Below are positions 1 through 50,700 of a stretch of 64,000 nucleotides of DNA, one piece after another. Within the stretch, counting starts at the first letter, position 1. Every line of letters begins with the position of its first letter. The notes under the pieces were generated by a model. That model did not search any database, was not told the origin of the DNA, and saw only the letters and a program-made list of their open reading frames with translations. This DNA comes from Amphiscolops sp. MND2022 (Eukaryota): NCBI GenBank assembly GCA_964187785.1, contig OZ076410.1, positions 51,150,001 to 51,214,000 on the forward strand. The letters are read 5' to 3'. The translations under genes and the position numbers were made by a program.

Positions 1-333
1 ACTGAGACGTTTAAATCTCTGATGGAAAGGAAGTCGTAGCCTACATAGTATTCTTTTATTACAACCACCTATTCATACAAACGAATATCTTCATTACCTG
101 AATATAACTACTTTCATGAATGGAACCTGCCAGCGACATTCAAGAAATTTCCTTCCTTTTGTAGCCAATTTACTCCATGGATCACGCATTCGCATGCATT
201 TTCACCTTTTCATTCATATTTTATCCTATTTCCTTCATTTATTTATCAAAGCGATCTCAATGGTTAGTTTCATGGCTGTACCTGCACGGACCGGTGGTCT
301 TTGATTGTGATTATTTACCAACTGTTAGTGTTA

Positions 334-339
334 GCAAAC
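334..339 (+). repeat. Left target-site duplication GCAAAC of the Polinton
   Basis: Direct repeat of 14738-14743, immediately outside the AGT terminus. Confidence 0.88.
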
Positions 340-1080
340 AGTAATAAGAGCGTGAGCAGATCAGGTGGGGGTGGAAGACCCTCATGTTTTAAGATAGACT
401 ATAGCCGTTCGGCTCGAGCCCAGGCCGAGAAGGGTCTTCTCAGGCCACGACTCGCTTCTCGGGTGGTGCTGGCTCGTGCTGCCGACTTGAGTCGTGCTCA
501 ATTCTGATTTGTTGAGTACTCAGCTCGTGCTGAATCGGAGCCGAGTGGTTGATATGTTGTCAATGTATAAGGATGTGCTCAATGTATCAAGATTGGGAAT
601 AGCTTCGGCAATGTTTTAGGGTAAGGAATAGCTTCGGTAATGTTTTACGATAGTGAACAGGGTTTTTCGGCACTTTGGCAAATTTTCGGCACTGTGGGAC
701 TTTGTTTAAAAAATTATTTTTAGTGGCCCGGCCGCCCGCGGGAGTAATTTTACCTGCCCCCGCAATATTTTATCCGCCTGCGGAATTTTTTATCCGCCAC
801 CGGGAAAATTTATCCGCCACCGGTATTTTTATACGCAATTTCGACTGGTTTCCGTGCTCGATTCTGATTGGCAGGTCTGATTGTCTCAATGTATAAAGGT
901 ATGGAAACGAGTGTCTTCTGATATATCAAGATATGCTATAGCTTCGTCAAAGTATAAAGATAGGAAAAGAGTAAGTGTCAAGGAAAAAAAAGAGCTAATA
1001 TGTCAGCAATGTATTAAGATCAGGAATAGGGTTTTTCGTCACCATGGGACATTTTTCGGCACTGCGAGATTTTGGGCAAA
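340..1080. repeat. Probable ancestral terminal inverted repeat region with internal sub-repeats (mirrored at ~14020-14737)
   Basis: Non-coding. GCTCGTGCT motif repeated at ~470-530; ~29-bp duplication at ~598-655; ~20-bp unit containing TTTATCCGCC x4 at ~760-835; partial direct repeat of 570-700 at 890-1080. Confidence 0.6.
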
Positions 1081-1310
1081 ATGAAATTTTGTGAGCACGA
1101 AGACCCAGGGGAATGTTTTCACCCACAAGCGCAAATGTTAATGATAGTGTGGGAGTTTTTTTTCGCCTGTGGGAACTTTTATCAACAGAGTATGTTGAGC
1201 TAGATACTCAACTGCTCTGGATTGATAAAAAACCTTTTATTGGAAAAACATTGCAATTAATCTGTATGAATGAATCAATTCCAATGCTACAAAATGTACA
1301 GAAATGTTGA
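1081..1310 (+). pseudogene. Small Polinton accessory ORF, convergent with PolB (mirror at ~13795-14030, - strand)
   Basis: ATG AAA TTT TGT GAG CAC GAA GAC... gives MKFCEHEDPGECFHPQAQMLMIVWEFFFACGNFYQQ, with in-frame stops downstream; function unknown. Confidence 0.4.
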
Positions 1311-2080
1311 ATGTTAATCAGACGAGAGTGACGTTCATTTTTTTAAAAACAATAGGTTTTAGGTAAATTTTAGTAAAAGGTCTTTTGTCTGTTCGTACAT
1401 GCCCATATTGCCAGGAATAGAACAAAGCACTGACGTCACGTCACACTCTCTTGCAAAACTCTTCCATATTTGGAAACGGGACAATCACCGCTGCTTTCAA
1501 TTTATCTCTTTTTCAATCAGTTGCGGTAAAAATTGAGTGAGTGAGAACCACAAAAGCACGTCTTGCAGCACCCACACATCAAGTCCGGGCGACATCATGG
1601 ATCGAGCTTGTTATGCTTCGTTTATTTCGATCAGCAAGTACGGAAAGAAATAGACAGTAGGCATTTGTCAAACACTTGTCCTTACAATGAAAAACTCACA
1701 GGGTGAACCACTCTTCTTTCATTTGGGATCATGTACAATCACACAGTTCCCTCTCGGTTTAGGCAATATATAGTGAGTTGGTGTCTGTTTCAAGCATTGC
1801 TTTAACATACAAACACCACAAGGATTGACGGAAATGTAGTAATAGTTCTCGAATCAGCATTCTGCAGGAGAAAATAAGCGTGTGTTCGCAGTGTTAATTC
1901 TTCTACAGTCGCACATTGATAAAAGTCAATCATTAGACTGATCCCATCCATACAGTTTTGATATACGATCTACTGACCACTTCTCATTTCTTGTCAGTCA
2001 GTCACAGACCCCAAAAAACCGTACAGAAAATTCAATGAAATTTTATTGAACAAGTCGTTCTTTAGTAATAACGTGCAAAA
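1300..2080 (-). pseudogene. Protein-primed DNA polymerase B, C-terminal palm/thumb fragment (left-arm copy)
   Basis: LETDTNSLYIA (degenerate motif C, xDTDS) at ~1760-1795; mirror of 13000-13795; stops and frameshifts. Confidence 0.75.
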
Positions 2081-2199
2081 CCCAAGCTCCAACAAAAGAA
2101 AGTGTTTTAGGATGTGTCAACTGAGGATTAAAGGGTGACTGACAACTCCTGCTTCCTGACTCGTGTCTAACAAACTAGTAAATTGTATGCTTTGCGATG

Positions 2200-2680
2200 A
2201 CAAATACGATACTGCAGTGCAAGAGACTGGGGTGGCGAGAAATAATCAGTCTATCTTTTTTTGTCTCCTAGGGTGAAAATCTCGTGGTTGTGAGCAATAA
2301 GTCTGGTACCTTCACGGATAATAAGTTCCAAGCGGTACAACTTGCAATTTTTGTAAGGTGTGGACAAGGTGGCAGTCGTAATTTGGTCTTGACACGTTCA
2401 AGTCTCCCTCCTGGAACGATTGTAAGGCTTAGTAAGAAATTATGCTGATTGAACATAGTAGTTGTATCTGGATTTCCAATTTCCCTCAGCTGAAGCTGCG
2501 ATTGTGTGATGTTTTGGTTTGAATAACGAAAAAGGACGTTTTCAACAATAACCACTGAAATAAAGTGTACACAGTAAATTTGATGGATTTAAAACTCGAT
2601 TCTATTGGACTCAAAACAAAATTATGCAGTTGCGTTCGTTGAAAGCATAATTTGCGCAATGTAATAATTATTAAGTATCA
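2200..2680 (-). pseudogene. Polinton accessory ORF of unknown function (left-arm copy)
   Basis: Mirror of 12466-12959; LFRYSNQNITQSQLQLREIGNPDTTTMF. Confidence 0.45.
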
Positions 2681-3989
2681 AAACATGGAAAATGACACAT
2701 ATCGCAACAAATCTGTATCGCTACGGAAGCAACTCGATTGTTAAGCTGTTAACAGAATAATGAAAAAATGGCGGAACGTTCGGTCAGCAATTTCAACCTA
2801 CCTTTTATGGAAGGTATGACTCAGTTTACCATGAAAGGGAGCGTAAGCCAACCATAAAAGGAAAAAGTAACTGCGTACTAGAGTCAGCGTTGCCTGTAAA
2901 GTATCTGTCAGTCAATTTCTATCTCTGTGAAAATTAATAGCTCAAGTATGTGATTCAACTGTCGGAAACAGTTTAAAATGCCCATTTAACAAGGAAGGAT
3001 CAACCGGGAAAAAACGGATCAGCTTGCAAACATCCTTCTAAAATAGAAAACTACGGAGGGACAATTTGCAATTGAACACTGTAAAAATTAACAGCGGAGC
3101 AATATTGAACATTTCATTGAAATTGTAATAAGATTGAAACAGTGATTCAGACAAACAACACTTCACAACCATGTAAAAGGAACGTAAAAAGTTATAAATT
3201 AGAAGGGGTAAAGGGTTAGGGTCATTTTGCACTCTGTTTGGGACATTGAGTGCAAAATAATCTCCCAACGGAACATTTCGTTTTGAGAGGTTTTGCTTTG
3301 ATACACGAGTTCCACAATTGTCGCAGGCAACTGTTTGATTTCAATCAAGAGCAGGCTTTATTGGCAGCGGGTGTAACAAGTGTTTATCTGAAAGCAAGTG
3401 TATCGTAACAAAAGTGTAACTCTAAAAACAAGCAACTAGATTTGTAACAGAAACTTCAAACAAGAAAGCCAGCAAATAGAATAGTAACAGAAAGTTGTAA
3501 AAGATTTAATCTGAAAGCGAGCAGCTATTTTGTAGAACTGTAATATTTTGAATGACTTGAAAATTGTTGAAATTTCAGTTTACAAAATTGTTAGACCATA
3601 TACAGAAGGTATGAGTCACTGAACCAAAAAAGGAATAGCTTTCCTACCATAAAAGGAAAAAGTAATTACGCACTAGCGTTAGATTTTCCTCTCAAGTACC
3701 TGTCAATCACTTTTAATCTCTCAAGGTATTTGCTCAAGTGTAACAAATTTCTCTCAAGGGACGCTACATTGTCTGAGAGAAATTGCTCAAGTGGAACAAA
3801 TTCACTCAAAAAGACACCGATACGTCTGGGAAAACCTCTCAAGTGGAGCAATTATCATGTCATAAAAGAAAAGTAGGGTGGGTAGTTGGCAGCTGGTTAC
3901 CCTTTCATCTTGCATTCCTTTAATTAGTTTCCATAAATAAAAAATGAATGACGTTCAAGTTTGATTGCTTTACAAAAGTAACACTCACA

Positions 3990-5010
3990 ATCGTGCAACG
4001 GAGTGCGGTAAAGAGCGCTTGAATGTTTGCTACAAAGTAAATGTGACTGTTGTAGCGTAGCAACCTAACAGTACTGGAATGCTTCTGCTTCTCTCTCATG
4101 TAGAGCTGAAAAACGTTACAAATTCTTTCTTCTGACCTTTCATTCCTGTGCAGTTGTATCGCCAAGGATTTGGAAACAGTTAAAAGGTCACAAGTGTTTT
4201 GATTACAATTGAGACAATTAACAAATCAATCCTTCAAAAGATGGTCCGGTAAAAGTGCATTCCTACAACCCATTGGAATATTCTTTAGTGAAATTGCAAA
4301 AACTGTAACCTTTGTCAACTTCCAAAACTGCCATTTCATGTTGACCATTCCACGGGGACAAGCTGTTATGACATTTTGTGAAGCAATCATTGCTTTAAAA
4401 TGCTTCAAGTCGTCCCCTGTAATCAACAGTTTGTATTTCTCCCACAATGAATTTTTTCCTTGAGGATGAACAAATCGACAGCGTGAGTCCTCAAAATTTT
4501 CCATTACGAAAATTAAAGCTACATTGAATTTAGCTGCGTATTTCAAGTGACCAAGTAAGTCATCCAGCTTGGAATTGAGCTTTTCGATACTGAAAGGTTC
4601 TACTGCGCAGTTGAATGTAACGTGATCTCCTTGCTCCAATTTTCAATCAACCAGAAATTGCTGATACGCACATGGAACATTTTTAGTGTCCGCGCCGATG
4701 GGATTGTTGCGAAATGGACGTGCACGTAGACAGAACAACCGAGTTCCCAACATTTTTTGTTGAATGCTCCCTGTTTTTGGGTTGTGCTGGTAGAAAAAAA
4801 CCCAAGAATTTCTGTGTGACACATTTTACATTTTTTTACTTTAAGCTTCACATTTTGCTGCTTCACAATACTGCAAATCAGGTCAGCTTGGGTTTTTGTT
4901 GAGAAATTAAAGTAATTGTGACAGTAAATACTTCAAAAAGAACATCTTTGTTATACAGAATGCTTCCTTTCTGTTTGTGTTCCAGTTTTTTTAAGTAAAG
5001 CTCATCCATT
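3990..5010 (-). pseudogene. pPolB N-terminal region with C2H2-like zinc finger (left-arm copy)
   Basis: CKMCHTEILGFF, then AAKFNVALIFVMENFEDSRCRF...WQFWKLTKVTVFAISLKNIPMGCRNALLPD and VRLLRYNSHIYFVANIQALF; frameshifted. Confidence 0.7.
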
Positions 5011-6093
5011 TCCACTAACAACACGCATTGTAACGATGTAACGCAACAAATCTGTATCTCCACGGAAGCAACTCGTCAGTAAAACGGTCAACAGAATAAT
5101 GAAATAATGGCGGAAAGTTCAGTCAAACCTTCATTCTGCCTTTTATGGAAAATATGAGTCACTGAACCATTGAAGGAAGTGTCAACTTACTTTAAAAGGA
5201 AAAGTTAATTACGCTATAGCATCTGCGAACCCTCTGAAGTACCTGTCAATCATTTTTCTCCTCTGTGAAAGTTGATTGCTCAAGTAGAACACGTTCCTCT
5301 GAATAACGACTAGGAAGTCCGGGAAGACGTCTCAAGGGGGACAAATCCCCTCAGTAGAACGTTGTTGTGTCTGAGAAAATAACCCAAGCGGAATAGATCC
5401 CCTGGGAAAGACGTCACATAGTCTGAGAAAGCTACTCTTGTTGAATAATTTCCCTTAGTAAGACGCGGCATCACAATTCAAAACAATAAATTATCATTTT
5501 TATAGATAGATAGCATGCGTAACTGACAAAAAATACACTTTTGTCTTTTCTCTTCAAATATCAACTTTCAACAAAAAAATTTCTCAGAAATCCCAAAAAT
5601 GGAAATGTTCAAATGTCATCCCTAACGTAGCAAAATCTTTGTAAATTGGTAGTAGCACGAGTATTAATGATACTGTTATTAGAAACGCGTATCATAGTCA
5701 CAAGACTTCTCACACTGATCCATTGTGGGTTGAATCAATAAAAGTCAATAACAAACTAATTCTACTTGGCTTTGTATTAATGCATTTAATTGCTTAAAAG
5801 TTTCGCATTATTCGATGGGCTAACAAAACGAAAAAATTTTACGTTACACAACCAAGAAAATGATTGTTTATAGACCAACAAATAGTACACCTTACGTTCA
5901 ATATAAAAGAGCTTTCCTATGTAGTGTATCATTCGTGATTTTTGTATCAAGCTCATTGTATTTGATCAATCAATGACTCTGCAAAACAAACAGATCTTGC
6001 TCACAAAGCACTCATCCCCTGGATTAACTAAAACCTGTGTTTAAGTTGAAATATTTTAATTTTTCTTTGTAAAACAAAACAATAGACAGCAAA

Positions 6094-6536
6094 TCACCGA
6101 TTAAATAGTTGCACAGTCCATGTACCAAACGTTTTTGCCTTTCTTTCAGCCCAGTGAAGAGTTGTTCGGTGTCTGTAGGGATAGCTGGAACACAACCAGT
6201 CACAATTGAGTTCTTGAATTTTTGGACATCCATAGTCATGTAAATTTTCGACCTGCTTACCCAGTAATGCGCTCAACATTGTGGAATTTTCCAATTCTAT
6301 TGCAAAGAATTCGGCTCTGTACTGCTTGAGGGTAGTCGAAAACTTTATAAGGTCATAGTAGTCCAGAGCACCGCTTCTCTAATCAAACTATTTGTGCACC
6401 AATGTGTTTGGAATGTTGGTTGAAAACTTGTTGGTGGTTCGAGCGATTATCCAAATACTTGTCCGTCAATGAAAACGCCCAATTCTTCAACATCATTTTT
6501 GTCTGCAAGCTCAACATCCATCACGATCAGAGACAT
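6094..6536 (-). pseudogene. DEDD-like (DxE) nuclease-fold accessory ORF, left-arm copy
   Basis: MSLIVMDVELADKNDVEELGVFIDGQVFG...ALDYYDL...GKQVENLHDYGCPKIQEL...CSSYPYRHRTTLHWAERKA; one frameshift near 6380. The nuclease assignment is inference from the hydrophobic-DxE start. Confidence 0.5.
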
Positions 6537-7026
6537 TGTTGCAACTTTACAGAGACAACATTGATTGGAGCTAACAATCTGGGTCACACTTGGTGTCGAT
6601 CCAAACTTTGTAAGTCAAAATGTAAGCAAGCAACTTGTTTGTACGACAGTGAAAATCAAAGTGAACTGAAAATGACAACTAAAGAAGGTAGTAGTCATTT
6701 TAGCATATAAGGTAATCCTTATTTGACGAAGTCTTCGCAAAATGGAGAAGCGTCATACTACCGTATATGGAAGCGTCAATCTACCATATATAGAAACGGT
6801 AATCTAGGGCTAGCTCAAGTGTTCTCTCAAGTACTCGTGGAAAGTTTTTCAAACTATTGAGAGATCTCTCATTCGGAAGACCAAATGCGTACAATTGTAT
6901 CGTTATAACTTCAAAGGACGTTACTTTGTATGGGAAAACTGCTCACGTAGAGCGACTGAATTTCATCCGAGGTTCTTTGTTTTTTCATCTTCCGTACCTC
7001 CTTATCTTCATTACATTTCAATTTTT

Positions 7027-7951
7027 CATGCGCAGAATTTTTATGCAATGACAATTGATTGCACAAAAAAGTATTTGTTTTTATTTATGACGCTTTTATA
7101 CAATTTGCTTTTAAACATGACACGGCCTAGAAATTTTACTTTTAAATCTGACGCGTTGTAAAAGTTTTACGTTAAAATCTGACGTGTTGTAAAAATTTTA
7201 CTTTAAAATCTGACAAGACGAAACAATTTCACTTTAAAATCTGACAAGAGCAAAAATTTTACTTTAAAACCTGACAAGACAAAAAATTTTTGCTTCAAAA
7301 CTTGTCTTTTTAATTATGTATCGCAAGTGCAAAATTTGACGTTTTTACGGAGCGACCAAAGAGAACAGGGACTGTAGTAAAGTTAACAAGACTAATCCAA
7401 TTGTGCAAACTGTAACATAGGAGTAGAACATAGCAGTCGGAACAAATGCCAATCTTTGGCGAAGCTTAAAATGCACTTTTGCAAGTATATATTTTTTATT
7501 GTGTCACATTTTAAAGTAAAAATTTTACAACGTGTCAGATTTTAAAGTGAAAAATTTACAACACTTCAGATTTTAAAGTGAAATATTTACAACGTGTCAG
7601 GTTTTTTGCAATTATTTTACAACGCGTCAGATATCACACGAAATAAAAAAATTGAAAAGACAAATTTGAAGGGCGTTTCTATTTTTTAAAGACAGGTTTT
7701 CACCCATTTTACTCCGTAGAAACGACAAATTTTGCACTTTCGATACATTCTTAAAAAGACAAGTTTTGAAGCAAAAAACTTTCGTCTTGTCAGAATTTAA
7801 AGTACAAATTTTACAACACGTCAGGTTTAAAAGTAAAATTTTTACGCCATGTCATATTCAAAAGCTAATAGTATATATACCGTCCTTGTTGAAAACAAAA
7901 TTTTTATGTGCAATCATTTTTCATTGCATCAAAATTCTGCGCAAGATCTGA
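7027..7951. mobile_element. MITE/fold-back-like inverted-repeat element in the palindrome spacer
   Basis: TGCGCAGAATTTT(T/G)ATGCAATGA at 7029 is inverted at ~7921-7943. ~31-bp units (TTTTACTTTAAAATCTGAC...) x5 at 7131-7290, reversed at ~7500-7632 and ~7785-7850. The left terminus is clipped by the palindrome arm. Confidence 0.65.
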
Positions 7952-8616
7952 AAGGTGTTGTAAAAAGTCGAACTAGTTTGTGATAGCAATATCAATGTGT
8001 TCCAATGATAGTATTGCTTCCCTGGTGATGTTCGGAATTTGCAACCAGCATCAGGTGACTCCGTGTAACAACTACTCTGACAGTGCTCTATGAAGGTTCT
8101 GATGGTTACCTAATATGGGTTAAATTGAAATGTAATGAAGATAAGGAGGTACGGAAGATGAAAAACAAAGAACCTCGGATTAAATTCAGTCGCTCTACGT
8201 GAGCAGTTTTCCCATACAAAGTAACGTCTTTTGAAGTTATTACGATACAATTGTACGCATTTGGTCTTCCGAATGAGAGATCTCTCAATAATTTGAGAAA
8301 CGTTCCACGAGTACTTGAGAGAACACTTGAGCTAGCCCTAGATTACCGTTTCCATATATGGTAGATTAACGCTTCCATGTACGGTAGTATGACGCTTCTC
8401 CATTTTGGGAAGACTTCGTCATATAAGGATTACCTTATATGGTAAAATGACTACTACCTTCTTTTGTAGTCATTTTCAGTTCACTTTGATTTTCACTGTC
8501 GTACAAACAAGTTGCTTGCTGAGAGATTTACTTTTTGATTTACAAACTTTGGATCGACACCAAGTGTGACCCAGATTGCTGGCTCCAATCAAAGTTGTCT
8601 CTGTAAATCTGCAAGA

Positions 8617-9059
8617 ATGTCTCTGATCGTGCTGAATGTTGAGCTTGCAGACAAAAATGTGGTTGAAGAATTGAGCGTTTTCATTGACGGACAAGTATTT
8701 GGATATTTGTTCAAACCACCAACAAGTTTTCAAACAACTTTCCAAACACTTTGGTGCACAAATAATTTGATTGGAGAAGCAGTGCTCTGGACTACTATGA
8801 CCTTATAAAGTTTTCGACTACTCTCAAGCAATACAGAGCCGAATTCTTTGCAATAGAATTGGAAAATTCCACAATGTTGAGCGCATTACTGGGTAAGCAG
8901 GTCGAAAATTTACATGACTATGGATGTCCAAAAATTCAAGAACTCAATTGTGACTGGTTGTGTTCCAGCTATCCCTACAGACACCGAACAACTCTTCACT
9001 GGGCTGAAAGAAAGGCAAAAACGTTTGGTACATGGACTGTGCAACTATTTAATCGGTGA
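8617..9059 (+). pseudogene. DEDD-like accessory ORF, right-arm copy (DxE reads NxE)
   Basis: MSLIVLNVELADKNVVEELSVFIDGQVFG...; C-terminal 66 aa identical to the left copy. Confidence 0.5.
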
Positions 9060-9849
9060 TTTGCTGTCTATTGTTTTGTTTTACAAAGAAAAATTAAAAT
9101 ATTTCAACTTAAACACAGGTTTTAGTTAATCCAGGGGATGAGTGCTTTGTGAGCAAGATCTGTTTGTTTTGCAGAGTCATTGATTGATCAAATACATTGA
9201 GCTTGATACAAAAATCACGAATGATACACTACATAGGAAAGCTCTTTTATATTGAACGTAAGATGTACTATTTGTAACGTAAAATTACTCCGTTTTGTTA
9301 GCCAGTTGCATAATGCGAAACTTTAGGCAATTAAATGCATTAATACAAAGTCAAATAGAATTAGTTTATTATTGACTTTTATTGACTCAACCCACAATGG
9401 ATCAGTGTGAGAAATCTTGTAATTATGATACGCGTTTCTAATAACAGTATCATTAATACTCAAATACTCGTGCTGCTACCATTTTACAATGATATTGCTA
9501 CGTTAGGGGTGACATTTGAACATTTCCATTTTTGGGATTTCTGAGAAATTCCTTTGTTGGAAGTTGATATTTGAAGAGAAAAGACTAAAGTGTAATTATT
9601 TGTCAGTTACGCATGCTATCTATCTTTAAAAAATGACAATTTATTGTTTTGGATTGTGATTCCGCGTCTTACCAAGGGATATTATTCACCAAGAGTAGCT
9701 TTCCCAGACTATGTGACGTCTTTTCCAGGCAATTTATTCCGCTTGGGTCATTTTCTCAGACACGCCAACGTCCTTTTGAGGGGATTTATTCCACTTGAAA
9801 GGTCTTCCTGGACTTTCTAGTCGTTACTTGAGAGGAACGTGTTTTCTTG

Positions 9850-10090
9850 AGCAATCAATTTTCACAGAGAAGAAAAATGATTGACAGGTACTTTAGAGGG
9901 AATGCAGATGCTATTGCGTAATTAAGTTTTCCTTTTAAAATAGGTTGATACTTCCTTTTATGGTTCAGTGACTCATACTTTCCATAAAAGGCAGAATGAA
10001 GGTTTGACTGATCTTTCCGCCATTATTTCATTATTCTGTTGACCGTTTTACTGACGAGTTGCTTCCGTAGAGATACAGATTTGTTGCGTT
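9850..10090 (+). repeat. Repeated ~250-bp cassette, copy A (related copies ~11330-11535, ~12185-12430; mirrored at ~5040-5285, ~3600-3800, ~2700-2945)
   Basis: Shared blocks ATTGACAG(G/A)TACTT(T/G)AGAGG, CCTTTTATGGT, TGACTCA..CTTCC; copies A and C also share TTCCGCCATT...GAGTTGCTTCCGTAG.GATACAGATTTGTTGC. Confidence 0.8.
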
Positions 10091-10109
10091 ACATTGTTAC
10101 AATGCGTGT

Positions 10110-11140
10110 TGTTAGTGGAAATGGATGAGCTTTACTTACAAAAACTGGAACACAAACAGAAAAGAAGCATTCTGTATAACAAAGATGTTCTCTTTGAAGT
10201 ATTTAGTGTCACAACTACTTTAATTTCTCAACAATAATCCAAGCTGACTTGGTTTAGAGCCTTGTGAAGCGACAAAATGTGAAGCGTACAGTAAAAAATT
10301 GTAAAGTGTGTCACACAGAAATTCTTGGGTTTTTTTTCCACCAGCACAACCTGAAAACAGGAAGCATTCAACAAAAAAAGGTGGGACCTCGGTTGCTCTG
10401 TCCACGTGCAGGTCCATTTTGCAACAATCCTATCGGCGCGGACACCAAAAATGTTCCATGTGCGTATCAGCATTTTCTGGTTGATTGAAAATTGGAGCAA
10501 GGAAATCACGTTGCATTCAACTTCGCATTAGGACCTTTCAGTATTGAAAAGCTCAATTCCAAGCTTGATGACTTAGTTGGTTACTTGAAATATGCAGGTA
10601 AAGTCAAAGTAGCTTTCGGTTTTGTAATGGAAAGATTTGAGGACTCACGCTGTCGATTTGTTCATCCTCAAGGAAAAAATTCATTGTGGGAAAAGTACAA
10701 ACTGTTGACTACAGAGGGATGACTTGAAACATTTCAAAGCAATGATTGTTTCAAAAAATGTCATAACAGCTTGTCCCCGCGGAATGGTCAACATAAAATT
10801 GCAGTTTTGGAAGTTGACAAATGTTATATTTTTTGCAATTTTGCTAAAGAATATTCCAATGGGCTGTAGAAATGCACTTTTACCGGACCATGTTTTGAAG
10901 GAACGATTTGTTAATTGTCTCAATTGTATTCAAAACATTTGTGACCTTTTAATTTTCTTCAAATCCTTGGCGATACAACTGCACAGAGATGAGAGGTCAG
11001 AAGAGAAAACTTGTAACGTTTTCCAGCTTTACATGAAAGAGAAGCAGAAGCATTCCAATGCTGTTAGGTTGCTACGCTAAAACAGTCACATTTACTATGT
11101 AGCAAACATTCAAGCGCTCTTCAACGCCTTTCGTTCCTAG
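10110..11140 (+). pseudogene. pPolB N-terminal region with C2H2-like zinc finger (right-arm copy)
   Basis: CKVCHTEILGFFFHQH...QHFLVD, then FNFA...KVAFGFVMERFEDSRCRF...KLTNVIFFAILLKNIPMGCRNALLPD...AVRLLR. This resembles the extension preceding the exonuclease domain of Polinton pPolB; the exonuclease and palm motifs A/B are absent. Confidence 0.7.
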
Positions 11141-11774
11141 ATTTGTGAGTGTTACTTTTGTCAACCAATCAAATTTAACGGCATTCAATTCCCATTTATG
11201 GAAAGTAATTAAAGAAATGCAAGAAGAAAGGGTAACCAGCTGTCAGCTACCCACGCTATTTTTCTTTTATGACATGATAATTGTTCCACTTGAGAGGTTT
11301 CCCCAGACGTATCGGTGTCTTTTCGAAGGAATTTGTTCCACTTGAGCAATTTCTCTCAGTCAATGTAGCGTCCCTTGAGAGAAACTTGTTACACCTGAAC
11401 AAATATCGTTCAGAGAGATTGAAAGTGACTGACAGGTACTTGAGAGGGGAATCTAACGCTAGTGCGTAATTACTGTTTCCTTTTATGGTAGGTAATCTAT
11501 TCCTTTCATGGTTTAGTGACTCATACCTTCCGTACATGGTCTAACAATTTTGTAAACTGAAATTTCAATCATTTTCAAGTCATTCAAAATATTACAGTTC
11601 TACAAAATAGCTGCTCGCTTTCAGATTAAATTTTGTACAATTTTCTGTTACAATTCTATTTGCTAGCTTTCTTGTTTTGAGTTTCTGTTACAAATCTAGT
11701 TGCTTGCTTTTAGAGTTACAACATTGTTACAATACGCTTGCTTTCAGCTAAACACTTGTTACGCTCGCTGCTAA

Positions 11775-11935
11775 AAAAGCCTGCTCTTGATCGAAATCAA
11801 ACAGTTGCCTGCGACAATTGTGGAACTCGTGTATCAAAGCAAAACCTTCAAAATGAAATGTTCCGTTGGGAGATTATTTTGCAATCAATGTCCCAAACAG
11901 AGTGCAAAATGACCCTAACCCTTTACCCCTTCTAA
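11775..11935 (+). pseudogene. Second copy of the extreme pPolB N-terminus (mirror at ~3230-3360, - strand)
   Basis: PALDRNQTVACDNCGTRVSKQNL, then after a frameshift CSVGRLFCNQCP: a pair of CxxC motifs. Confidence 0.5.
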
Positions 11936-12465
11936 TTTCTAACTTTTTACGTTCCTTTTACATGGTTGTGAAGTGATGTTTATCTGAATCACTGTTTCAA
12001 TCTGATTACAATTTCAATAAAATGTTCAATATTGCTCCGCTGTTAATTTTTACAGTGTTCAATTGCAAATTGTCCCTCCGTAGTTTTCTATTTTAGAAGG
12101 ATGTTTGCAAGCTGATCCGTTTTTCCCGGTTGACCCTTCCTTGTAAATAGGGCATTTTAAGCTGTTTCCGACAGTTGAATCACATACTTGAGCTAATAAT
12201 TTTCACAGAGATACAAAATTGATTGACAGATACTTTAGAGGCAACGCTGACTCTAGTACGTAGTTAGTTTTTCTTTTTATGGTTGGTTTACGCTCCTTTT
12301 ATGGTAAAGTGACTCACACCTTCCATAAAAGGTAGGTTGGATTTGCTGACTGAACGTTCCGCCATTTTTTCATTATTCTGTTAACATCTCAACAATCGAG
12401 TTGCTTCCGTAGCGATACAGATTTGTTGCAATATGTGTCATTTTCCATGTTTTCATACTTAATAA

Positions 12466-12959
12466 TTGAATCATTGCGCAAAATTATGCTTTCAACAAAT
12501 GCAATTGCATAATTCTGCTTTGAGTCCACAACATTTGAGTTTTATATCAATCAAATTTACTGTGTTCACTTTATTTCAGTGGTTATGGTTGGATTCGTCC
12601 TTTTTCGTTGTACAAACCAAAACGTCACACAATCGCAGCATCAGCTGAGGGAAATTGGAAATCCAGATACAACTACTATGTTCAAACAGCATGTTTTTTT
12701 ACTATGCCTTACAATCGTTCCAGCAGCGAGTCTTGAACGTGCCAAGACCAAATTACGAATACCACATTTTTCCTTACTTTACAAAAATTGCAAGTTGTAC
12801 CACTTGGAACTTATTATCCGCGAAGCTACCAGACTTATTGCTCACAACCACGAGATTTTCACCCCAGGAGACAAAGAAGATAGACTGCTTATTTCTCACA
12901 ACCCCAGTCTCTTAGGGTTCCTCCGAATCAGGAACCTGGAGTTGTCAGTCACCCTTTAA
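12466..12959 (+). pseudogene. Polinton accessory ORF of unknown function (right-arm copy)
   Basis: 126-aa open segment GFVLFRCTNQNVTQSQHQLREIG...KLYHLELIIREATRLIAHNHEIFTP, conserved between arms; starts just downstream of the repeated cassette. Confidence 0.45.
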
Positions 12960-12999
12960 TCCTCAGTTGACACATCCCAAAACACTTTTGTTGGAGCTT

Positions 13000-13795
13000 G
13001 GGTTTTGTATGTTATTACTAAAGAACGACTTGTTCAATAATATCTAATTGAATTTTCTGTACGGTTTTTTAGTATCAGTGACTGACTGACAAGAAATGAG
13101 AAGTGGTCAACAGATCGTATATCAAAACTGTATGGATGGGATCAGTCAAATGATTGACTTTTATCAATGTGCGACTGTACAAGAAATAACACTGCGAACT
13201 CACGCTTGTTTTTTCCTGCAGTATGCTGATTCGAGAACTATTACTGCATTTCCGTCAATTCTTGTGGTGTTTGTATGTAAACGGATTGCTTGAAACGGAC
13301 ACCAACTCACTATATATTGCCTAAACCGAGAAGGAATTGTGTGATTGTACATAATCTCAAATGAAAGAAGAGTTCACCCTGTGGATATCTCATTGTAAGG
13401 ACGAGTTTATGACAAAAGCCTACTGTCTATTTCTTTCCGTACTTGCTGAACGAAATAAAAGAAGCATAACAAGCTCGATCCTAGTCTCTGCAAGGCAGAA
13501 TTTAGTCGCACGGATTTGTTGTGTGGGTGCTGCAAGACGTTCTTTTGTGGTTCTCACTCACTCAATTCAATTTTTACCGCAACTGAATGAACAAGAGATA
13601 AATTGAAAGCAGCGGTGATTTTCCTGTTTCCAAATATTGAAGACTTTTGCAAAAGAAAGTGACGTGATGTCAGTGCTTTGTTCTATTCCTGGCAATATGG
13701 GTATGTACGAACAGACAAAAGACCTTTAACTACATTTACCTAAAACGTATTGTTTTAAAAAAATGAATGTCACTCTCGTCTGATCAACATTCAAC
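13000..13795 (+). pseudogene. Protein-primed DNA polymerase B, C-terminal palm/thumb fragment (right-arm copy)
   Basis: FFLQYA followed by LETDTNSLYIA at 13289-13321, then K..EF...CCKTF and MYEQTK / YIYLKRIV segments typical of the Polinton pPolB C-terminus; several stops and frameshifts. Confidence 0.78.
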
Positions 13796-14737
13796 ATTTC
13801 TGTACATTTCATAGCATTGAAATTGATCCATTTATACAGTATAAATGCAATTTTTTCCAATAAAAGCTTTTTCATCAACAGAGAGCAGTCAAGTATCTAG
13901 CTCAACATACTCTGTTGATAAAAGTTTCCACAGGCGAAAAAACTCCTACACTATCATCAACATTTGCGCTTGTGGGTGAAATCAATCCCCTGGGTCTTCG
14001 TGCTCACAAAATTTCATTTTGCCCAAAGTTTCGCAGTGCTGAAAAATGTCCCACTTTGACGAAAAACCCTATTCCCGATCTTAATACATTGCTGACGTTA
14101 TTAGCTGTTTTTATTCATTGACACTTACACTTTTTCATCTTTATACTTTGACGAAGCTCTAGCATATCTTGATATATCAGAAGACACTCGTTTCCATTCC
14201 TTTATACATTGAGACAATCAGACCGGCCAATCAGAATCGAGCACGAAAATTCAGTCGGAATTGCGGATAAACTATACCGGTGGCAGCTAACTTTTTCCGG
14301 TTGCGCATAAAATATTCCGCAGGCGGATAAAATATTGCGGGGCGGATAAAATTATTCCCGCGGGCGGCCGGGCCTACTAAAAACAATTTTTTACCCAAAA
14401 TCCCACAGAGCCGAAATTGTCCCACAGTACCGAAAAACAGTACCTTTTTCACTATCCTAAAACATTACCGAAGCTGTTCCCAATCTTTATACATTGGGCA
14501 CGTCCTATTACGTTGACGACACCTCAACCACTTGGCTCCGATTCAGCACGAGCTGAGCCCTCAACAAGTCAGAATCGAGCACGACTCAAGTCGGCACCAC
14601 GAGCCAGCACCACCCGCGAAGCGAGTCGTGGCCTGGGAAGACCCTTCTCGGCCTGGGCTCGGGCCGAACAGCTATAGCCTATTTCAAAACATAAGGGTCT
14701 TCCACCCCCCACCTGATCTGCTCACTCTCTTACTACT

Positions 14738-14743
14738 GCAAAC
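14738..14743 (+). repeat. Right target-site duplication GCAAAC of the Polinton
   Basis: Direct repeat of 334-339, immediately after terminal ...TACTACT. Confidence 0.88.
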
Positions 14744-14885
14744 ACTAAAAGCGATGAATATCTCTTCTCTAGCTGTTGAAGAAAAACGACTTCAGAGGCA
14801 CTCGAAGACGAATTAAGAAAGCTATCGGCTTGTCTCCGGGTCCGATGAAAGTGAGATATTTAAATAAATGGAAAGGTAAAAGGAA

Positions 14886-15479
14886 TTGTTTGTGAAGGCT
14901 TTCGGGTTGGGTAGTTACATAAGGTCTAACGGATCAAGAAAAGTCATTCTGACAAACTTTGAAAGGAAATACAGTCACTACCAGCTACGCCTGAAAAATA
15001 CAAAGAAACATTTCTTGAGCCGTTTCAAAATGGAAATGAACCTACAATTCTCAAACGTAGATCTAGTTGCCGAGCCAGTTAGTCCAAGCTACTTCTCATC
15101 AGTAGACGAATTGGTCGTAGACGTGAAGTCCGTGGAAGCTGCTGCCAGCGGATCAGGTGAAAGCGATATAGAAGTTATTGCATGTTACCGGCAAGTGCCA
15201 TTAAATCCTCAAACTACAATTGCTGGTAGAAAGATGACGACCGATCTGTCTGGTTGTACAGAGAGTGAATTCCCAGACTTTCCTTGGGACGATTTCGAGA
15301 AAATCTTGCAGTCGACGGAACAAGTAGACCCTCTGGACAGGCGGGCAGGGCTTTGTGGAGCTTCAAGAACTGGCAGTCCGTTAATCAGACATTGCGGGAA
15401 ACTACACCCTCAGGTTCATGCCCCTATATCTCCGCCGGCCTGTGATAAACCAACTACATATCGAGGTGAGACTTATTGA
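14886..15479 (+). CDS. Extra sense-strand ORF of a third LTR-retrotransposon family, reading across the PPT into the LTR
   Basis: 197-aa open frame. Purine-rich GGACAGGCGGGCAGGG is followed by TGTGGAGC at 15354, the same ORF/LTR junction geometry (RAGL|CG) as in element 1 (GAGL|LQ). Confidence 0.45.
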   Translation: MFVKAFGLGSYIRSNGSRKVILTNFERKYSHYQLRLKNTKKHFLSRFKMEMNLQFSNVDLVAEPVSPSYFSSVDELVVDVKSVEAAASGSGESDIEVIACYRQVPLNPQTTIAGRKMTTDLSGCTESEFPDFPWDDFEKILQSTEQVDPLDRRAGLCGASRTGSPLIRHCGKLHPQVHAPISPPACDKPTTYRGETY

Positions 15480-17045
15480 GAGCGATCAAGAAGACAAGGA
15501 GTTTACCTTGGTCTGTGATTTTTGTCCCTAGGGGAGTGTCACAGGCTGCCGTCACAGTAATTATTACCAAATCCTACTGGAAGGAGATAAAACCAACCAG
15601 ATGTTCTCACAGTTTAGACCACTGGGACACTCGGTCCGAACAGCCACAACAAACTTTAACTTAATCAACATGAAAAATATTAAATTAGAAAATACTATTT
15701 GTGTCTGTTATACTAGAAAGCTGTTATGATTTTGTTATACAAAGTATGTGAATATGCAGTAAATTATTACGTGGACAATTAGTGCGCAAGTATAATATGA
15801 ATGGAAACGTGTTCAAAATAATTACAATTCCAATTTACTGTAGTCGTTGTTTTAGGCGTGATTAACCAATCACAATGATGTAATTATTTTGCTGTAGCCG
15901 CGTAGACTGGCAGTCTGCTGCAGTAGAATTAGTACACCTCCTATCACCAGTGCTATACTTGAATGTATTATGTAGCCATAGGGACCATTGGTCCGCTATG
16001 GTTAGAATCTATCGTATGCATGTACCTTCATATTTAGACAGCATGAAACATTTCAGTTTAGTTTCCATGTATATAATCCAACTGAAAGTATAGCAGTTTC
16101 ACCCTGATTGGCTTCCCGCTTAAATTTTTCCTTTGATGTAATAATATCATGATGTCATTATGACGCAAGATCGAAAGGAGCTATTTTCAGTAATTTTGAT
16201 TCTAAAATTAGCAACATGACTCGCAAAATTAGGGTTGTCACCCCCCAGATGACTAAAAATACGAGAGACTGGCAGGCTAAAGGACAACACAACTGATGCT
16301 AATCTGACACTTGCTAGTTGCAATTAACCTAACGTTCATTGTGATTGTTTACATACAAAGACCAGTTGTACCAGTTTCAAATATCTTCAATTCAGTTAAT
16401 CAAGACATTGATACAATTCATTGTTAAAACGTTGAATTTTATTTTAATGCCTTCAACTAGAAACAAAAAGCAAAAGAAAGGCGTTCTATGCAGTTTGTTT
16501 GATTTAGAAAAGTAGAAACAGCTGACATTATGAGGAAGTTACACAAGGGACGGGAACAGAAATAATTAGTGTGAAGATGAGTTAAATTCAGACTCATCTA
16601 TTTGACTAGAATCAAACAGGCTTCAGCAAAGTTCAAATATTTTAGGAGAGGATTTTAGATCCTTACATGATACTAAAAGTAAAGAAAACAGCGAAATGAG
16701 AATTGAGACGACTAGGATAATTAGTGCGGAAATCGCTAACCAGATGTCAAGGAAATTGAATGAAGTTAAATCCAGTCTTAATGCTCAAATTCAAGATGCA
16801 ATATCAACAGCAATTTCTGAGAAAATGCTTTCGACAATCCAAAAAACTATTAGCATGCAGGGGAGAACTAATTTCACCGTTTTGGACCGAAAGTCCAGTG
16901 GGCTACAAAGGTGCCCCGGAGCCGTGAATCCCCATAAAACATGGGAAAATCACCTCAAAATGGGTTTTACACGTGAAACCAAAAAACGTGTGGGTGGTAA
17001 GACAGAGTTCAGTAGGTTCTTATACAAGCGAACAAAATTGCGACA
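15354..17045 (+). mobile_element. Probable 3' LTR of a third Gypsy-like family
   Basis: TG...CA ends (TGTGGAGC...TTGCGACA). Contains a degenerate Gag-like N-terminus from ATG 16447 (MPSTRNKKQK...IETTRIISAEIANQMSRKLNEVKSSLNAQIQDAIS...SEQNCD) that stops at the CA, as in the other families. No PBS follows. Confidence 0.5.
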
Positions 17046-17397
17046 ATGGTATTGACTAGATCACAAACCTCTAAAAGTAACCCAACTGAGATAATAGAAA
17101 TGGACTACAACAGTGATAACGACAGTGAAGCTAGTTTCCGAGACTGCAATGCACGTGGTGCATCCAACAACATTGAGAGAGCGAATTTGCTAGATCTTGA
17201 GAGAGTTCATGAAAGAATTAGAAATGATCAAAGGTTTATAGAATTGAATAACCAGATCAGAGAAATGACCTCATCTGTTAAAGCTTTGGCGAATCAGATT
17301 ACTTCTGCTATTTCAACTAACGAGCGTATTACCCCTCAGAACAGGGAAGAGAACACACAAAATGCTGTCAACTTAGACACGTTGTGTGATTCTGACA
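17046..17397 (+). mobile_element. 3' part of an LTR of a fourth family carrying a Gag N-terminus
   Basis: MVLTRSQ...NDQRFIELNNQIREMTSSVKALANQI..., coiled-coil-like Gag leader ending at ...TCTGACA (17397), then unrelated sequence. Confidence 0.4.
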
Positions 17398-17459
17398 CTC
17401 ATCGAGTTGACTCTTATCGAAGTTCGATCGTGCTACAACTGCAGCATGACAGTAGTACT

Positions 17460-18300
17460 ATTGGAGAGATTTCGTTGTAAGATCGAACTACGAAATGCAT
17501 AATAGAGTTGGCGAACAGTTTCCACAACGCATGTCAGCATCTCCATATAATCTCATTGCGATTATTAAGTCTAACCTAGACGACTACTTCCAAAGTCGCA
17601 GCAACAAGAAAAAGAAATCATCTAGGAAAAGTGGTTTTCATACCACTTCAAGGAAGAGTTTATCTACTATGCTAAATCATTACAAACGACAGAGTTGTTC
17701 TCTCACGCAACAATTGTTGAATCAGAAATTCAGACCAAATCATCTTTTTTGGGCAATTTTAAGTACCCAGATGATTTTGAATCAAACACGACGCCAGCTA
17801 AGTACCGTGACATTTTCCGCCACAAAAAATCAGACTTCAGCCTGGTTCGGGAGCAATACCTCCTGTCTGCTACGCGGACGCACTACGGACGGAAAAAAGT
17901 GGAGAAATTTGGCAGAGTTTGTGAAAAACGCTACACAGATGGTGATTTTCAACTCCCTACACAATAAATTATTGGGGCGGAAAACAATAATGTTATAGCA
18001 GAAGAGATGTGTTTCAGTACGACACGTAGTACGAATCGTATTAGGAGGTGCAATAATGATACGATCCTGCCCCCAACCTACTACGGTAGGTGTGATGGTC
18101 CTGTCACGGTTAATATGGGAAGCTATGAGATCCCGAACTTCAATACTTTGTGTTTTACTATCAAAAAAGATAGTGCAGCTGGTATTGTGAACAGTAGTGA
18201 CTGTTCATACAGCCAAGAATAAGTCTCTAACTGCAGAATTTACTACTCTAATTTATTTATTACAGCTATTGTTGAAACTACTGGTTATATGACTCAGCCT
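17460..18300 (+). pseudogene. Degenerate coding-like segment of unknown identity
   Basis: 17695-17967 and 18007-18222 are the same frame separated by one TAA; the frame extends upstream (EKWFSYHFKEEFIYYAKS) and beyond a second stop; Cys-containing; no family recognised. Confidence 0.3.
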
Positions 18301-47730: not shown

Positions 47731-50700
47731 TCAGTCTGGATTTTGAGTTACCTCGTTTGTAGTGACAACGTCTAGCATCCGGAAATCAGGATGTGCATTA
47801 TGTCTAGGATTAGGGCGTAGATTATATCTTCCTGTTTTATTAGGATTATATCCAACGACTATAGGAGGTAATGTAGGCGGCACTGGAGGACTTTCGGTAG
47901 GTGGTGGTGTCATTATAAAAGGGTTATCGCTGACGTCCAGTCTAAAATGACGTAAGGTCCGTTATCAATGGGCACTTCTGTAATTGTAGCTTCTTCATTT
48001 TTTCTCTCCGTTGGTTGTCCGAACAGAACTTCTCCGAATTCGGTTTCCCAAGCTTCCCCTTTGACTGTTACGTCAGGTACTGGTCGATTGGGCGCATATA
48101 GCTTTAGGCGAATTCTATGGAGGGCTTGTGTATACCTTGTTCCCGTTCGCCGTACGACGTAGTTGTTATTAGAAAGGACTTTGACCACAATATAAGATCC
48201 CGTCCAAATGCAAGCTTTGAAAGCGAATTTCAATGACTGGTTATCAGCCTTCGGATTCAGGACATAGCAATAGTCATTGACTTTCAATGGCGTTGCTGTC
48301 GCTTTTTCATCGTAATATCGCTTGTACTTTAAGTATGATTGCATAAGGTTGTCCTTAGCTGCTTGGTGAACTTCTGTTGTTTGTTTCTGTAATTCGTCCG
48401 TTAGATCTTCGTTGGCGTCTTTTTTCCATTCTGGATTGAGACCTGTTTGATGTGCAAGATGTTGTACGGTATTCGTCCGTGAAACACTGTTGTCGGTTCG
48501 CAGCCTAAGCTTTCGTGGTAGCTCGTGTTGTCGTTCATGACAGCAATTTGCACATAATTGTGCCACATTGAGCGTCGTTCTCCCGTCGATTTTTTTCTCC
48601 CGTTTTCAATGATGCATGAGTTCTTTCGAGTATCCCTATTGTTTGGGCGTGTTTTGTCGATGCGTGGCTGATTCGGATGTCAAGCGTTTGTGCTATTTGG
48701 TTTATGACATCAGAGCGAAAACGTGATCCTTTGTCAGTGAGAATCACTGTTGGTAGGTAACAATGACGTGTCATGACATCCACTATGCATCGGCCGACTG
48801 TTCTGACAGTCATATCTTGGGTAGGGTAGGGTTGACAGTAATTCTGGTACCATATGTTTCGGTATTAGAATTTGGTGGTGTGTGACTGTGCCATCTTCTC
48901 CGTAGTATTTGCGCATGAGGACTCCGTCTTTGACTATTATTCTCTCTTCATGGCGTAATAGGTTTCGTCCACTTGGTTTAGTTTTAAGGAGGTGTTTGTC
49001 GTATCCTTCATGTAATAGGCGTACTTTTAATGCCTTTAAAATCGGGTCCGCGTCTTGTTCATTACGTATGGGTGCATTTTCTTTGATGGCTCCAAATTCG
49101 TAGACTGCCGTATTGAGCGGTATATGAACTGTTTCTGTTACTTCGGTTGATAGGTTTTGTTGTTCTTTGTCGTCTATGGCTCGTTGTTTACTAAGCGCTT
49201 TCCTTGCAAAAATCTTTTGTTCTGATTCCTCTTCTTCGTCTGGTAGGAAAAAGAGTTGTTCTTCATCTGCAACGTCTGTTGATTGTAGGTTGACTTCGAT
49301 GGGCGCCGTTATGATGTCGTCTCGTAGTTTGAATTGGACTTTCTTTTTTGTGGTTAGTTCCAGTCGAGACAAGAAATCGGCTGCATTGTTTTGTGAACCT
49401 GTGACGTGCATGATACGGAATTGGAATTGTAGTACATAGTCACAGGCGTTCCAGAGGGTGGGTGGTGTGGTTTTTGTCTGAAAGAATATCGTTACTGATC
49501 TGTTATCCGTGAGTACTAGTGTTGGTAATGTTGTTTCCCACAGGATGTGACTGTATTCTAAGAACGCGTGATAAATTGCGAGGAATTCTTTGCAATATAT
49601 TGACCTTTTTAACTGTGACGGGGAGAAAACTCGTGATCCGAAAGCGACCGGTGCGAAGGTTTTCCGTTCGGAAAGCAATTTTTTTCGTCATTTTCCTCTA
49701 TCATTAAAGCCTATCGAGGTGCTCGGAAGCTTGCGTCCGTCATTAGTATGTACTGTTTTCCTGCGACAGGTAGTCTCAGTGCTAAACCACAGGCTTCCAC
49801 GAGGCTTGTGTTGGTGGTTTTGAGATCGTTATCGAGTTCTTCAGATATGACTGTTTTTGCATCTGCTTTCAAGATCTCATACAATCCGATCAGTTTTTCC
49901 GACAGCCGGGGAAAATCGTTTCTGTAGTAGTTTACAAATCCAATGTTTTTTTGGACTTGTTTCGTTGATTTGGGAAAACTGATTTCAGATAAGAAATTGG
50001 TGATTTTGTGATCTTGTGGGGCTACTCCGTTTGGGGTGATGGTTCTGCCGAAGAATTCTACTTGCGTAACCCCAAAGTGGCATTCCTCGATTGCGAGTTT
50101 TAGACTGGCTTTGCGTACAAGTTTGCAGACCGCTCTGATGTTCTTCATGAGTTGTTCCGTTGTGTTGGCGGCAATCCCAATATCGTCCACGTATTGGTCA
50201 CATTGGTCTGCTTTGATGACTGCGTCGAGGTACTCCCGCATGAAGCTTGAGAATGCTGACAAGGCTCTACTTGGTCCTTGGGCTAGCCTCCGGTAGGCAA
50301 ATGTCCTACTAGCAAAATTGAACGCTAGGAGTTCTACTGACCTTTGATCTGCCATTTGAAGGCAGTGGTAGGCTTGCGAGCAGCCGAGTTTGCAGAACAA
50401 TTTTTCCCCGCTAAGTGTTGTACCGCATCTGAAAAGGGTGCTGATGGGGTGGTTGTTGTTGATGTAGTTGTCTGAAATGAGGGCATTGATCTTCCTCAAG
50501 TCAACAAGTAGGCGTAGTTTTCCGTTGGGTTTACTTTGAGCAAATATTGAGCTAGCGTATTTGGAAAATGGGATTGTTGTGATGATCCCGTATATATGCA
50601 TTAGGGCGAGTTCCACTGTGAGGTCGTCCTTGAGGTTTATGGGTACGGGTAAGCTCTGTGTGTATACGGTTTGTCGTTTTTGGGAGTTAGACATACATTG

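Follow-up and report, generated by a model that had tools for sequence, protein, structure and literature searches.

A giant palindrome in Amphiscolops DNA is probably an old copy of a mobile, non-autonomous Polinton family

We analysed 64,000 nucleotides of DNA from Amphiscolops sp. MND2022 (GenBank assembly GCA_964187785.1, contig OZ076410.1, positions 51,150,001 to 51,214,000), here called the window, which contains a 14,398-bp Polinton derivative at positions 340-14737. This element is probably an old, inactive insertion of a non-autonomous Polinton family whose normal form is a giant palindrome and which moved as one unit. The copy in the window is dead, with an arm divergence of 7.7% and a longest stop-free stretch of at most 148 codons. 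A reading of the letters alone (the sequence-only reading) had already identified the element as a single hairpin, and to this identification we add a single origin of the palindromic form, a candidate helper sharing its terminal sequence, and the near-identity of the two arms at insertion.

Both ends of the element could be read directly. The 5' end at 340 begins AGTAATAAGAG, and the other terminus, taken as the reverse complement from 14737, begins AGTAGTAAGAG. Both open with AGTA(A/G)TAAGAG, which corresponds to the 5'-AG...CT-3' ends of Polinton-type terminal inverted repeats (TIRs), and the same start is present in five related elements whose ends were read. The left junction reads GCAAAC followed by AGTAATAAGAGCGTGAGCAGATCAGG, and the right junction, reverse-complemented, GTTTGC followed by AGTAGTAAGAGAGTGAGCAGATCAGG, so that GCAAAC stands on the plus strand on both sides. 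This target-site duplication (TSD) is perfect (6/6); the probability that six given positions all match by chance is 1/4096. The 18-mer GAGCAGATCAGGTGGGGG is confined to the two element ends, with 0 occurrences expected. The AGT-type termini at 340 and 14737 and the perfect GCAAAC outside them, as proposed by the sequence-only reading, were thus borne out, and the structure as a whole greatly exceeds what chance would produce.

When the left half was compared with the right half by blastn on the minus strand, the arms paired from the ends inwards with increasing identity: 339-2163 with 14738-12924 (88.2%), 2221-5848 with 12913-9273 (90.9%), and 5878-7024 with 9275-8122 (95.6%). The AT-rich zone of 31-bp repeats is also palindromic (7029-7183 with 7943-7789, 83%), and the innermost pair is formed by 7198-7352 and 7868-7712 (82%). 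A repeat search returned 25 colinear inverted pairs connecting about 367-6984 with 8161-14709. Over the 6,816 columns of the main diagonal the arms are 92.3% identical and differ by 518 mismatches and 60 gap openings. The earlier estimate that the arms cover about 92% of the element holds for their well-conserved part; the palindrome extends further inward, and both arms together make up 97.5% of the element. A 178-bp segment next to the centre is present only in the right arm of the window copy but on both sides in another copy (L007), and the left arm of the window copy has therefore lost it after the arms were made. No second copy of the palindromic element was found elsewhere in the window, and Rfam gave no match anywhere in it. 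The parts of the element are, with the strand given where a feature has one:

334-339: left TSD GCAAAC, read directly, identical to 14738-14743
14738-14743: right TSD GCAAAC, read directly
340-14737: whole palindromic non-autonomous Polinton derivative, 14,398 bp
340-7352, minus strand: left arm, 7,013 bp, gene remnants facing the terminus (outward); 92.3% identical to the right arm (blastn)
7712-14737, plus strand: right arm, 7,026 bp, gene remnants facing outward (blastn)
7353-7711: central loop, 359 bp, with a unique stretch and one array of 31-bp repeats
340-818, plus strand: left terminal region, mirroring 14260-14737, inner bound approximate; counterpart of the 483-bp TIR of the relative L005
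14260-14737, minus strand: right terminal region, similar to the L005 TIR (see below)
747-836: subterminal 20-bp tandem repeats, left (Tandem Repeats Finder)
14263-14358: subterminal 20-bp tandem repeats, right, the mirror array (Tandem Repeats Finder)
7098-7300, minus strand: 31-bp tandem array at the inner end of the left arm, homologous to the L005 arrays at 5996-6437
7468-7643, plus strand: 31-bp tandem array within the loop
7723-7864, plus strand: 31-bp tandem array at the inner end of the right arm, partner of 7098-7300
7944-8121: the 178-bp segment, in the window copy in the right arm only

The same palindrome was found elsewhere. Seven family loci were fetched, all from the ENA assembly ERZ25074608, and six of the seven family copies examined, the one in the window included, are palindromic and lie at different loci:

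Window copy, 340-14737: complete palindrome, 14.4 kb, TSD GCAAAC (6/6)
L003, 250-15797: complete palindrome, 15.5 kb, arms 91-93% identical, TSD CATGGT/CATGGG (5/6)
L009, 1064-13699: complete palindrome, 12.6 kb, arms 97-98% identical, TSD TATATA/TACATA (5/6)
L006: palindromic, left arm cut off, the cut adjoining retroelement genes
L007: palindromic, left arm cut off
L008: palindromic, centre split by a DUF1759 retroelement
L001, 6047-13772: one-armed, with 1.5-kb TIRs and a perfect TSD AGCGCA

The loop contains a unique stretch (about 7355-7470 in the window) that recurs in full in L003 and L006. L007 has the part beginning at about 7413, and the stretch is absent from the autonomous-type relative L005 described below. 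Because this loop-specific sequence is shared, the fold-back most likely happened once and its product then spread, and since the same centre occurs at other loci with different TSDs, the palindrome moved as a unit. The sequence-only reading had expected that, if the palindrome itself transposed, other loci would carry the same fold-back junction next to different 6-bp duplications, and such loci exist, complete in L003 and L009 and partial in L006-L008. The one-armed L001 is without most of the centre, has its inner junction inside the 178-bp segment adjoining the centre, and appears to have been derived from the palindrome by deletion. L004, a relative with 43% identity that comes from another sample, has no inverted repeats.

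The relation to Polintons becomes clear from a 17,385-bp element in ERZ25074608 (L005/L010). It has 483-bp TIRs that are 95% identical, a perfect TSD (GATGTC), and the terminus AGTAGTAAGAGAGTGAGCAGATCAG. It encodes an integrase (rve, E = 6.6e-10), whose cluster comprises 127 members at at least 90% identity, and an ATPase of the Pox_A32 type (E = 1e-4). It also has a weak Peptidase_C5 (adenain) match that is below the cutoff (E = 0.002), and no capsid genes were identified in it by Pfam. Its PolB gene consists of three open reading frames (ORFs) of 311, 428, and 753 aa. The 753-aa ORF is 46% identical to the protein P0105 (1,162 aa; E = 4e-143) in an alignment spanning the DNA_pol_B_2 region, and for the 428-aa ORF three of 25 relatives match DNA_pol_B_2 weakly. 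Judged by every defining feature testable here, L005/L010 is a Polinton. The first 66 bp of the window element are 90% identical to its terminus, and 14260-14738 of the window are 72% identical to its TIR over about 480 bp. These matches support that the window element is a Polinton derivative sharing its ends with the L005/L010 lineage, and they make L005/L010 a candidate helper with matching ends. The assignment to the Polintons made from the letters alone agrees with the AG termini, the 6-bp TSD, the PolB remnants, and the shared terminal sequence of this 17.4-kb relative, which is also the kind of autonomous element with the same TIR that had been sought. A Foldback, hAT, or MULE-type identity was rejected in view of the termini, the TSD, and the relatives.

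The coding content of the arms is heavily decayed. All 157 stop-free pieces of at least 40 aa from both arms were scanned with Pfam, which returned only chance-level matches and no PolB, integrase, ATPase, protease, or capsid domain. When the 17 ORFs of the L005 relative were used as tblastn queries, the window element was matched by the PolB ORFs, by a 180-aa ORF, and by a 64-aa ORF that falls within the 31-bp arrays; the integrase, the ATPase, and 11 other ORFs of the relative had no match in it. Neither Pfam nor tblastn matched a packaging ATPase, an adenain-like protease, or capsid genes in the window element, and rve integrase was absent from every family copy in tblastn searches with the integrase of the relative. 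Because the integrase is absent in the family copies and present in the relative, the window element has to be regarded as a non-autonomous derivative and not as an autonomous Polinton member. The loss of integrase, ATPase, and capsid genes had been predicted by the sequence-only reading. Its PolB pieces and accessory ORFs in each arm were recovered in part, as tblastn remnants of PolB and of a single 180-aa ORF in both arms, but not by Pfam, which on its own would have pointed wrongly to the absence of PolB. The remnants are located as follows:

1439-5070, minus strand: broken PolB remnant of the left arm, outer bounds (tblastn)
10060-13664, plus strand: broken PolB remnant of the right arm, outer bounds (tblastn)
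6100-6590, minus strand: broken remnant of the 180-aa Polinton ORF, left arm, 167/180 residues in two frames with six stops
8617-9053, plus strand: broken remnant of the 180-aa ORF, right arm, 149/180 residues in two frames with four stops

In the left arm PolB is covered at 269 of 311 residues of the N-terminal ORF, 53 of 428 of the second, and 108 of 753 of the third. The aligned stretches contain 13 in-frame stops; in addition, the reading frame changes several times, two or more large deletions have removed sequence that includes the polymerase core, and an internal segment is triplicated. The right arm covers 311/311, 116/428, and 114/753 residues, contains 17 in-frame stops in the aligned stretches, and has the same deletions and triplication. 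The triplicated segment derives from the region upstream of and at the start of PolB and is present in three copies per arm. The 180-aa ORF remnant is reversed in orientation compared to the autonomous-type relative. The arm DNA is a mosaic of 31-bp arrays, the inverted 180-aa ORF, the triplicated PolB-start segment, a short C-terminal PolB piece, and the TIR. A 138-aa piece of the left arm (window 4229-4642, minus strand) has 383 relatives in a collection of 1.84 billion proteins, and about 19 contigs carry close relatives of it (63-84% identity). In P0105 this 138-aa domain (residues 133-259) is located N-terminal of the DNA_pol_B_2 match (735-879, E = 3.7e-8). Compared with the window by tblastn, P0105 aligned over residues 115-403 only, and the closer L005 was needed for the rest. 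A profile built from 25 relatives of the exonuclease-side part gave only zinc-finger matches against the PDB, and neither the third PolB ORF nor the 180-aa ORF had a useful match there.

Some observations on these proteins may be added. Across all family copies PolB is preserved best in its N-terminal region, which comprises a C2H2 zinc finger and the 138-aa domain and in the window lies at 3956-5070 and 10060-11158. The terminal protein of protein-primed systems frequently takes the form of an N-terminal fusion or has its coding sequence directly upstream of polB (PMC4046053). Residues 918-990 of P0105, within the polymerase part, match DUF559 (a Vsr-like endonuclease), and the stretch is conserved in L005 (11227-13488). 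The 180-aa ORF belongs to a family of 150-180-aa ORFs (L005 2866-3408) with 809 clusters at E <= 0.001, one of which contains 1,088 member sequences, and this family has no Pfam or PDB match.

The most informative comparison is that of the arms within and between copies, which was done for three to four segments across all copies. In all five two-armed copies the closest relative of every arm is its own partner arm. Identities between partner arms are 89-94% in the window copy across the segments, 91-98% in L003, 85-92% in L006, 92% in L008, and 97-98% in L009, thus 85-98% overall versus 80-91% between copies. Ordered by arm divergence, L009 is the youngest copy (2-3%), followed by L003 (2-9%), the window copy and L008 (about 8% each), and L006 (8-15%). 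In an ungapped alignment of 838 columns, 73-84% of the arm differences carry a state private to the respective copy. Columns in which two copies are both arm-divergent occur at the chance rate (e.g. window/L003, 7 observed and 6.4 expected), the sole excess being L003/L008 (14 observed, 7.1 expected), and a master element with already diverged arms has left no trace in this alignment. Larger changes are symmetric as well. The window copy and L009 have each lost most of the second PolB ORF from both arms, and L003 has lost it from neither. Since L009, the youngest copy, has the same truncated gene content in both arms, the element was presumably non-autonomous already when it moved. Together with the symmetric deletion, the alignments show that the arms were near-identical at each insertion although the lineages differ by 10-20%. 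In the active lineage the arms thus appear to evolve in concert, a change in one arm ending up in both. The sequence-only reading had taken the lesions common to both arms, such as the stop after LYIA and the scrambled PolB order, as a sign that the fold-back happened after decay had begun. This conclusion is not required, because shared lesions do not date the fold-back if the arms evolve in concert, as the symmetric PolB deletion illustrates.

How could such an element arise and be maintained? The founder might have been generated when the PolB-side part of a Polinton was duplicated in inverted orientation, through copy-back or a template switch. The event may have been located next to the internal 31-bp repeat arrays of the parent. 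In L005 such arrays occupy an internal intergenic region (5996-6437), and the matching arrays form the palindrome centre (window 7098-7864); the arrays of the parent are direct repeats only. The product would have two identical Polinton ends, which could be recognised in trans by the replication and integration proteins of an autonomous relative, and the integrase of this helper would complete the insertion and make the 6-bp TSD. The sequence-only reading had proposed a copy-back defective genome of this kind, and it is largely supported, because the element has the PolB-side part twice, in opposite orientations, and has lost the other end, but the arms are a rearranged mosaic and not a plain half of the parent.

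For the concerted arms, protein-primed strand-displacement replication offers a route. In protein-primed replicons the panhandle that the TIRs of the displaced strand form serves as an origin (PMC4046053). In the case of a palindrome, this strand would fold into a full-length hairpin, an extreme form of the TIR panhandle, in which one arm could correct or template the other. Concerted arms could result from mismatch correction in the hairpin or from copy-back at the centre in each cycle, alternatives that are not separated by sequence alone. Either route would leave the arms identical at integration, after which they would decay independently like the long terminal repeat (LTR) pair of a retroelement. 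A more specific proposal, that the family actually replicates through the hairpin and regenerates the second arm from the first in each cycle, rolling-hairpin-like on a protein-primed Polinton replicon, is tentative and in our view rather unlikely. In this mode one arm together with the central turn would be copied back on itself, or the displaced strand would snap into a full-length hairpin and be corrected there. If it were true, arm identity would be the first comparative-genomic readout of single-stranded Polinton intermediates, and every palindromic copy could be dated like an LTR element.

Several points weigh against a palindromic family that moved as a unit and kept its arms alike during replication. 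The mechanism is a proposal drawn from sequence patterns. The relatives all come from the single assembly ERZ25074608, in which the window's own locus was not found by look-up of a window ORF in the contig collection. Two of the three TSDs of complete palindromic copies agree at only five of six positions (at least five matches have a chance of 0.5% each). Pfam itself finds no domain in the window element, and the AlphaFold model of the exonuclease-side part (P0167) failed (predicted local distance difference test, pLDDT, 38), so that the PolB assignment depends on sequence links via relatives. Finally, the mismatch density along the arms is over-dispersed (variance/mean 4.4 in the window copy and 7.9 in L003), and in both of these older copies divergence is highest at the CpG-rich termini. 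This unevenness suggests that some conversion after insertion, or local rate differences as at the CpG-rich terminus, may act in addition.

The last point leads to the best-surviving alternative, namely that the palindrome is mobile but its arms have been homogenised after insertion by chromosomal arm-to-arm gene conversion, as in sex-chromosome palindromes and chloroplast inverted repeats. The inner 1.1 kb of the window copy, 95.6% identical compared to 88% in the outer part, would fit such a process, and the gradient in L003 runs in the opposite direction. However, conversion would have had to cover the whole 6-7 kb independently in five two-armed copies and nevertheless leave 2-15% divergence. 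The arm differences of the youngest copy, L009, are evenly spread (p = 0.16), the differences are mostly private and not common between copies, and a structural difference of about 1 kb is symmetric within copies of two lineages at different loci, which places it in both arms before insertion. We therefore regard post-insertion conversion as an improbable explanation of the arm identity.

Palindromes might also form repeatedly, by independent copy-back from one-armed elements such as L001 just before integration. The existence of L001 with its perfect TSD is in favour of this idea, which would likewise yield arms that are identical at insertion. But the palindromic copies have one and the same centre, including the loop-unique stretch that is missing from the relative, six of the seven copies are palindromic, and L001, being without most of this centre, resembles a product rather than a source. 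Recurrent formation is improbable as well, somewhat more so than conversion.

Two further explanations are very improbable. Long palindromes are known to result from assembly errors and from local rearrangements, and the structure could accordingly be local and immobile, formed by a head-to-head double insertion, by an inverted duplication after insertion, or as an artefact. Two head-to-head insertions were rejected because a single perfect TSD brackets the whole element. Mis-assembly was rejected because artefactual arms would be identical, whereas these differ by about 8% including the gaps noted above, and because an independent assembly has this architecture with this centre at five further loci, of which two are complete and flanked by TSDs of their own. 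Equally hard to defend is a hairpin-RNA locus kept by the host to produce double-stranded RNA and small RNAs against the PolB of active Polintons, for which only the geometry speaks, a self-complementary sequence of about 7 kb with homology to PolB and a conserved Polinton ORF, together with a Polinton family that has many near-identical integrase copies; the arms decay at a rate similar to that of other copies with no sign of conservation, and the window copy sits among nested retroelements.

With a palindromic Polinton family that moved as a unit as the probable explanation, the surroundings of its copies can be described briefly. The remainder of the window (15000-64000) consists of nested LTR retroelements, with LTR pairs at 19056-20679/32768-34390 (95.5%) and 37707-40390/52921-55716 (92-94%), a 2.15-kb tandem duplication at 43215-45369/45369-47525 (99.3%), and reverse transcriptase/RNase H ORFs at 48734-50694 on the minus strand. 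At 27-33 kb and 40-54 kb both GC and AT are strongly skewed, in agreement with the coding strand of the retroelements. In L007 the terminal 1.1 kb and flanking sequence are repeated three more times in tandem past the right end (14046-18292), and two ends have near-identical flanks, pointing to an amplification of the element/flank junction after insertion. About 100 bp outside the right end of L009 lies a gene with a Pfam Monjiviricetes_fusion match (13805-14140), which may be a fragment of an endogenous RNA-virus glycoprotein. L003 contains a tandem duplication of about 965 bp in one arm only (12646-15797 compared to 250-3385; L002 1248-2212 / 2213-3177), which is an arm-specific change that followed insertion.

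Polinton replication has so far been inferred almost wholly in silico (PMC10748475). The spread of these defective palindromes implies that two Polinton ends and little else sufficed for propagation. The arms acted as one unit in this process, being near-identical at insertion and turning deletions symmetric. Because concerted arms are a prediction of panhandle or hairpin intermediates, they would provide indirect evidence for the protein-primed strand-displacement model. In addition, the divergence of the arms is an internal clock of Polinton activity. In annotation, palindromic Polintons are easily mistaken for assembly errors, for a pair of elements, or for unclassified inverted repeats, and it seems fair to call them an overlooked parasite class, as the sequence-only reading suggested. 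Limited full-text searches of a partial literature collection turned up gene-bearing TIRs of about 2 kb but no Polinton derivative that is palindromic throughout and propagated in chromosomes.

Published Polintons are 13-25 kb long and have TIRs of 100-1,500 bp (PMC10748475). The window element resembles Polintons/Mavericks in its 5'-AG...CT-3' termini, its 6-bp TSD, its TIRs, and its remnants of a protein-primed PolB. It differs in that inverted arms of 7.0 kb each take up 97.5% of its length, while the TIRs of the relative comprise 483 bp, and in that it has no integrase, ATPase, protease, capsid gene, or polymerase core. A 2026 preprint describes polintons of butterflies (Pieris/Euchloe) with TIRs of about 2 kb carrying hexon and adenain (bioRxiv 10.1101/2025.02.07.637071). 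There, too, the TIRs reach into coding sequence and genes are present twice per insertion, but these TIRs are part of otherwise complete elements, whereas the window element is wholly repeat, carries PolB-side remnants, and is non-autonomous. With LTR pairs the palindrome shares that the repeats are identical when made and diverge later, so that the divergence within copies orders insertions by age. LTRs are, however, direct repeats made by reverse transcription, while the arms of the palindrome are inverted and their mechanism is a proposal. Foldback-type elements (Drosophila FB, Galileo) have very long inverted repeats and internal tandem repeats and are mostly non-autonomous, as is the case here, but they belong to cut-and-paste superfamilies, make TSDs of 7-9 bp, and have arms of tandem repeats and not of gene remnants; a relation in sequence was neither expected nor found.

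The palindrome also resembles defective viral genomes, the classes of which have been reviewed (PMC13506859), for example the snap-back genomes of adeno-associated virus (PMC8235507). In both cases two inverted copies of one parental end surround a short turn, the other end has been lost, and two identical origins result. What the window element contains is derived from the PolB side of the parent, together with one ORF that has been relocated. Defective genomes in which one end forms a long inverted duplication are produced in adenovirus stocks, too. Snap-back genomes depend on a helper, and for the window element the relative with matching termini and many near-identical integrase copies is a candidate helper. 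While snap-back genomes are transient members of virus stocks, the palindromic Polinton lineage appears to be heritable, to have integrated many times, and to have diversified by 10-20%.

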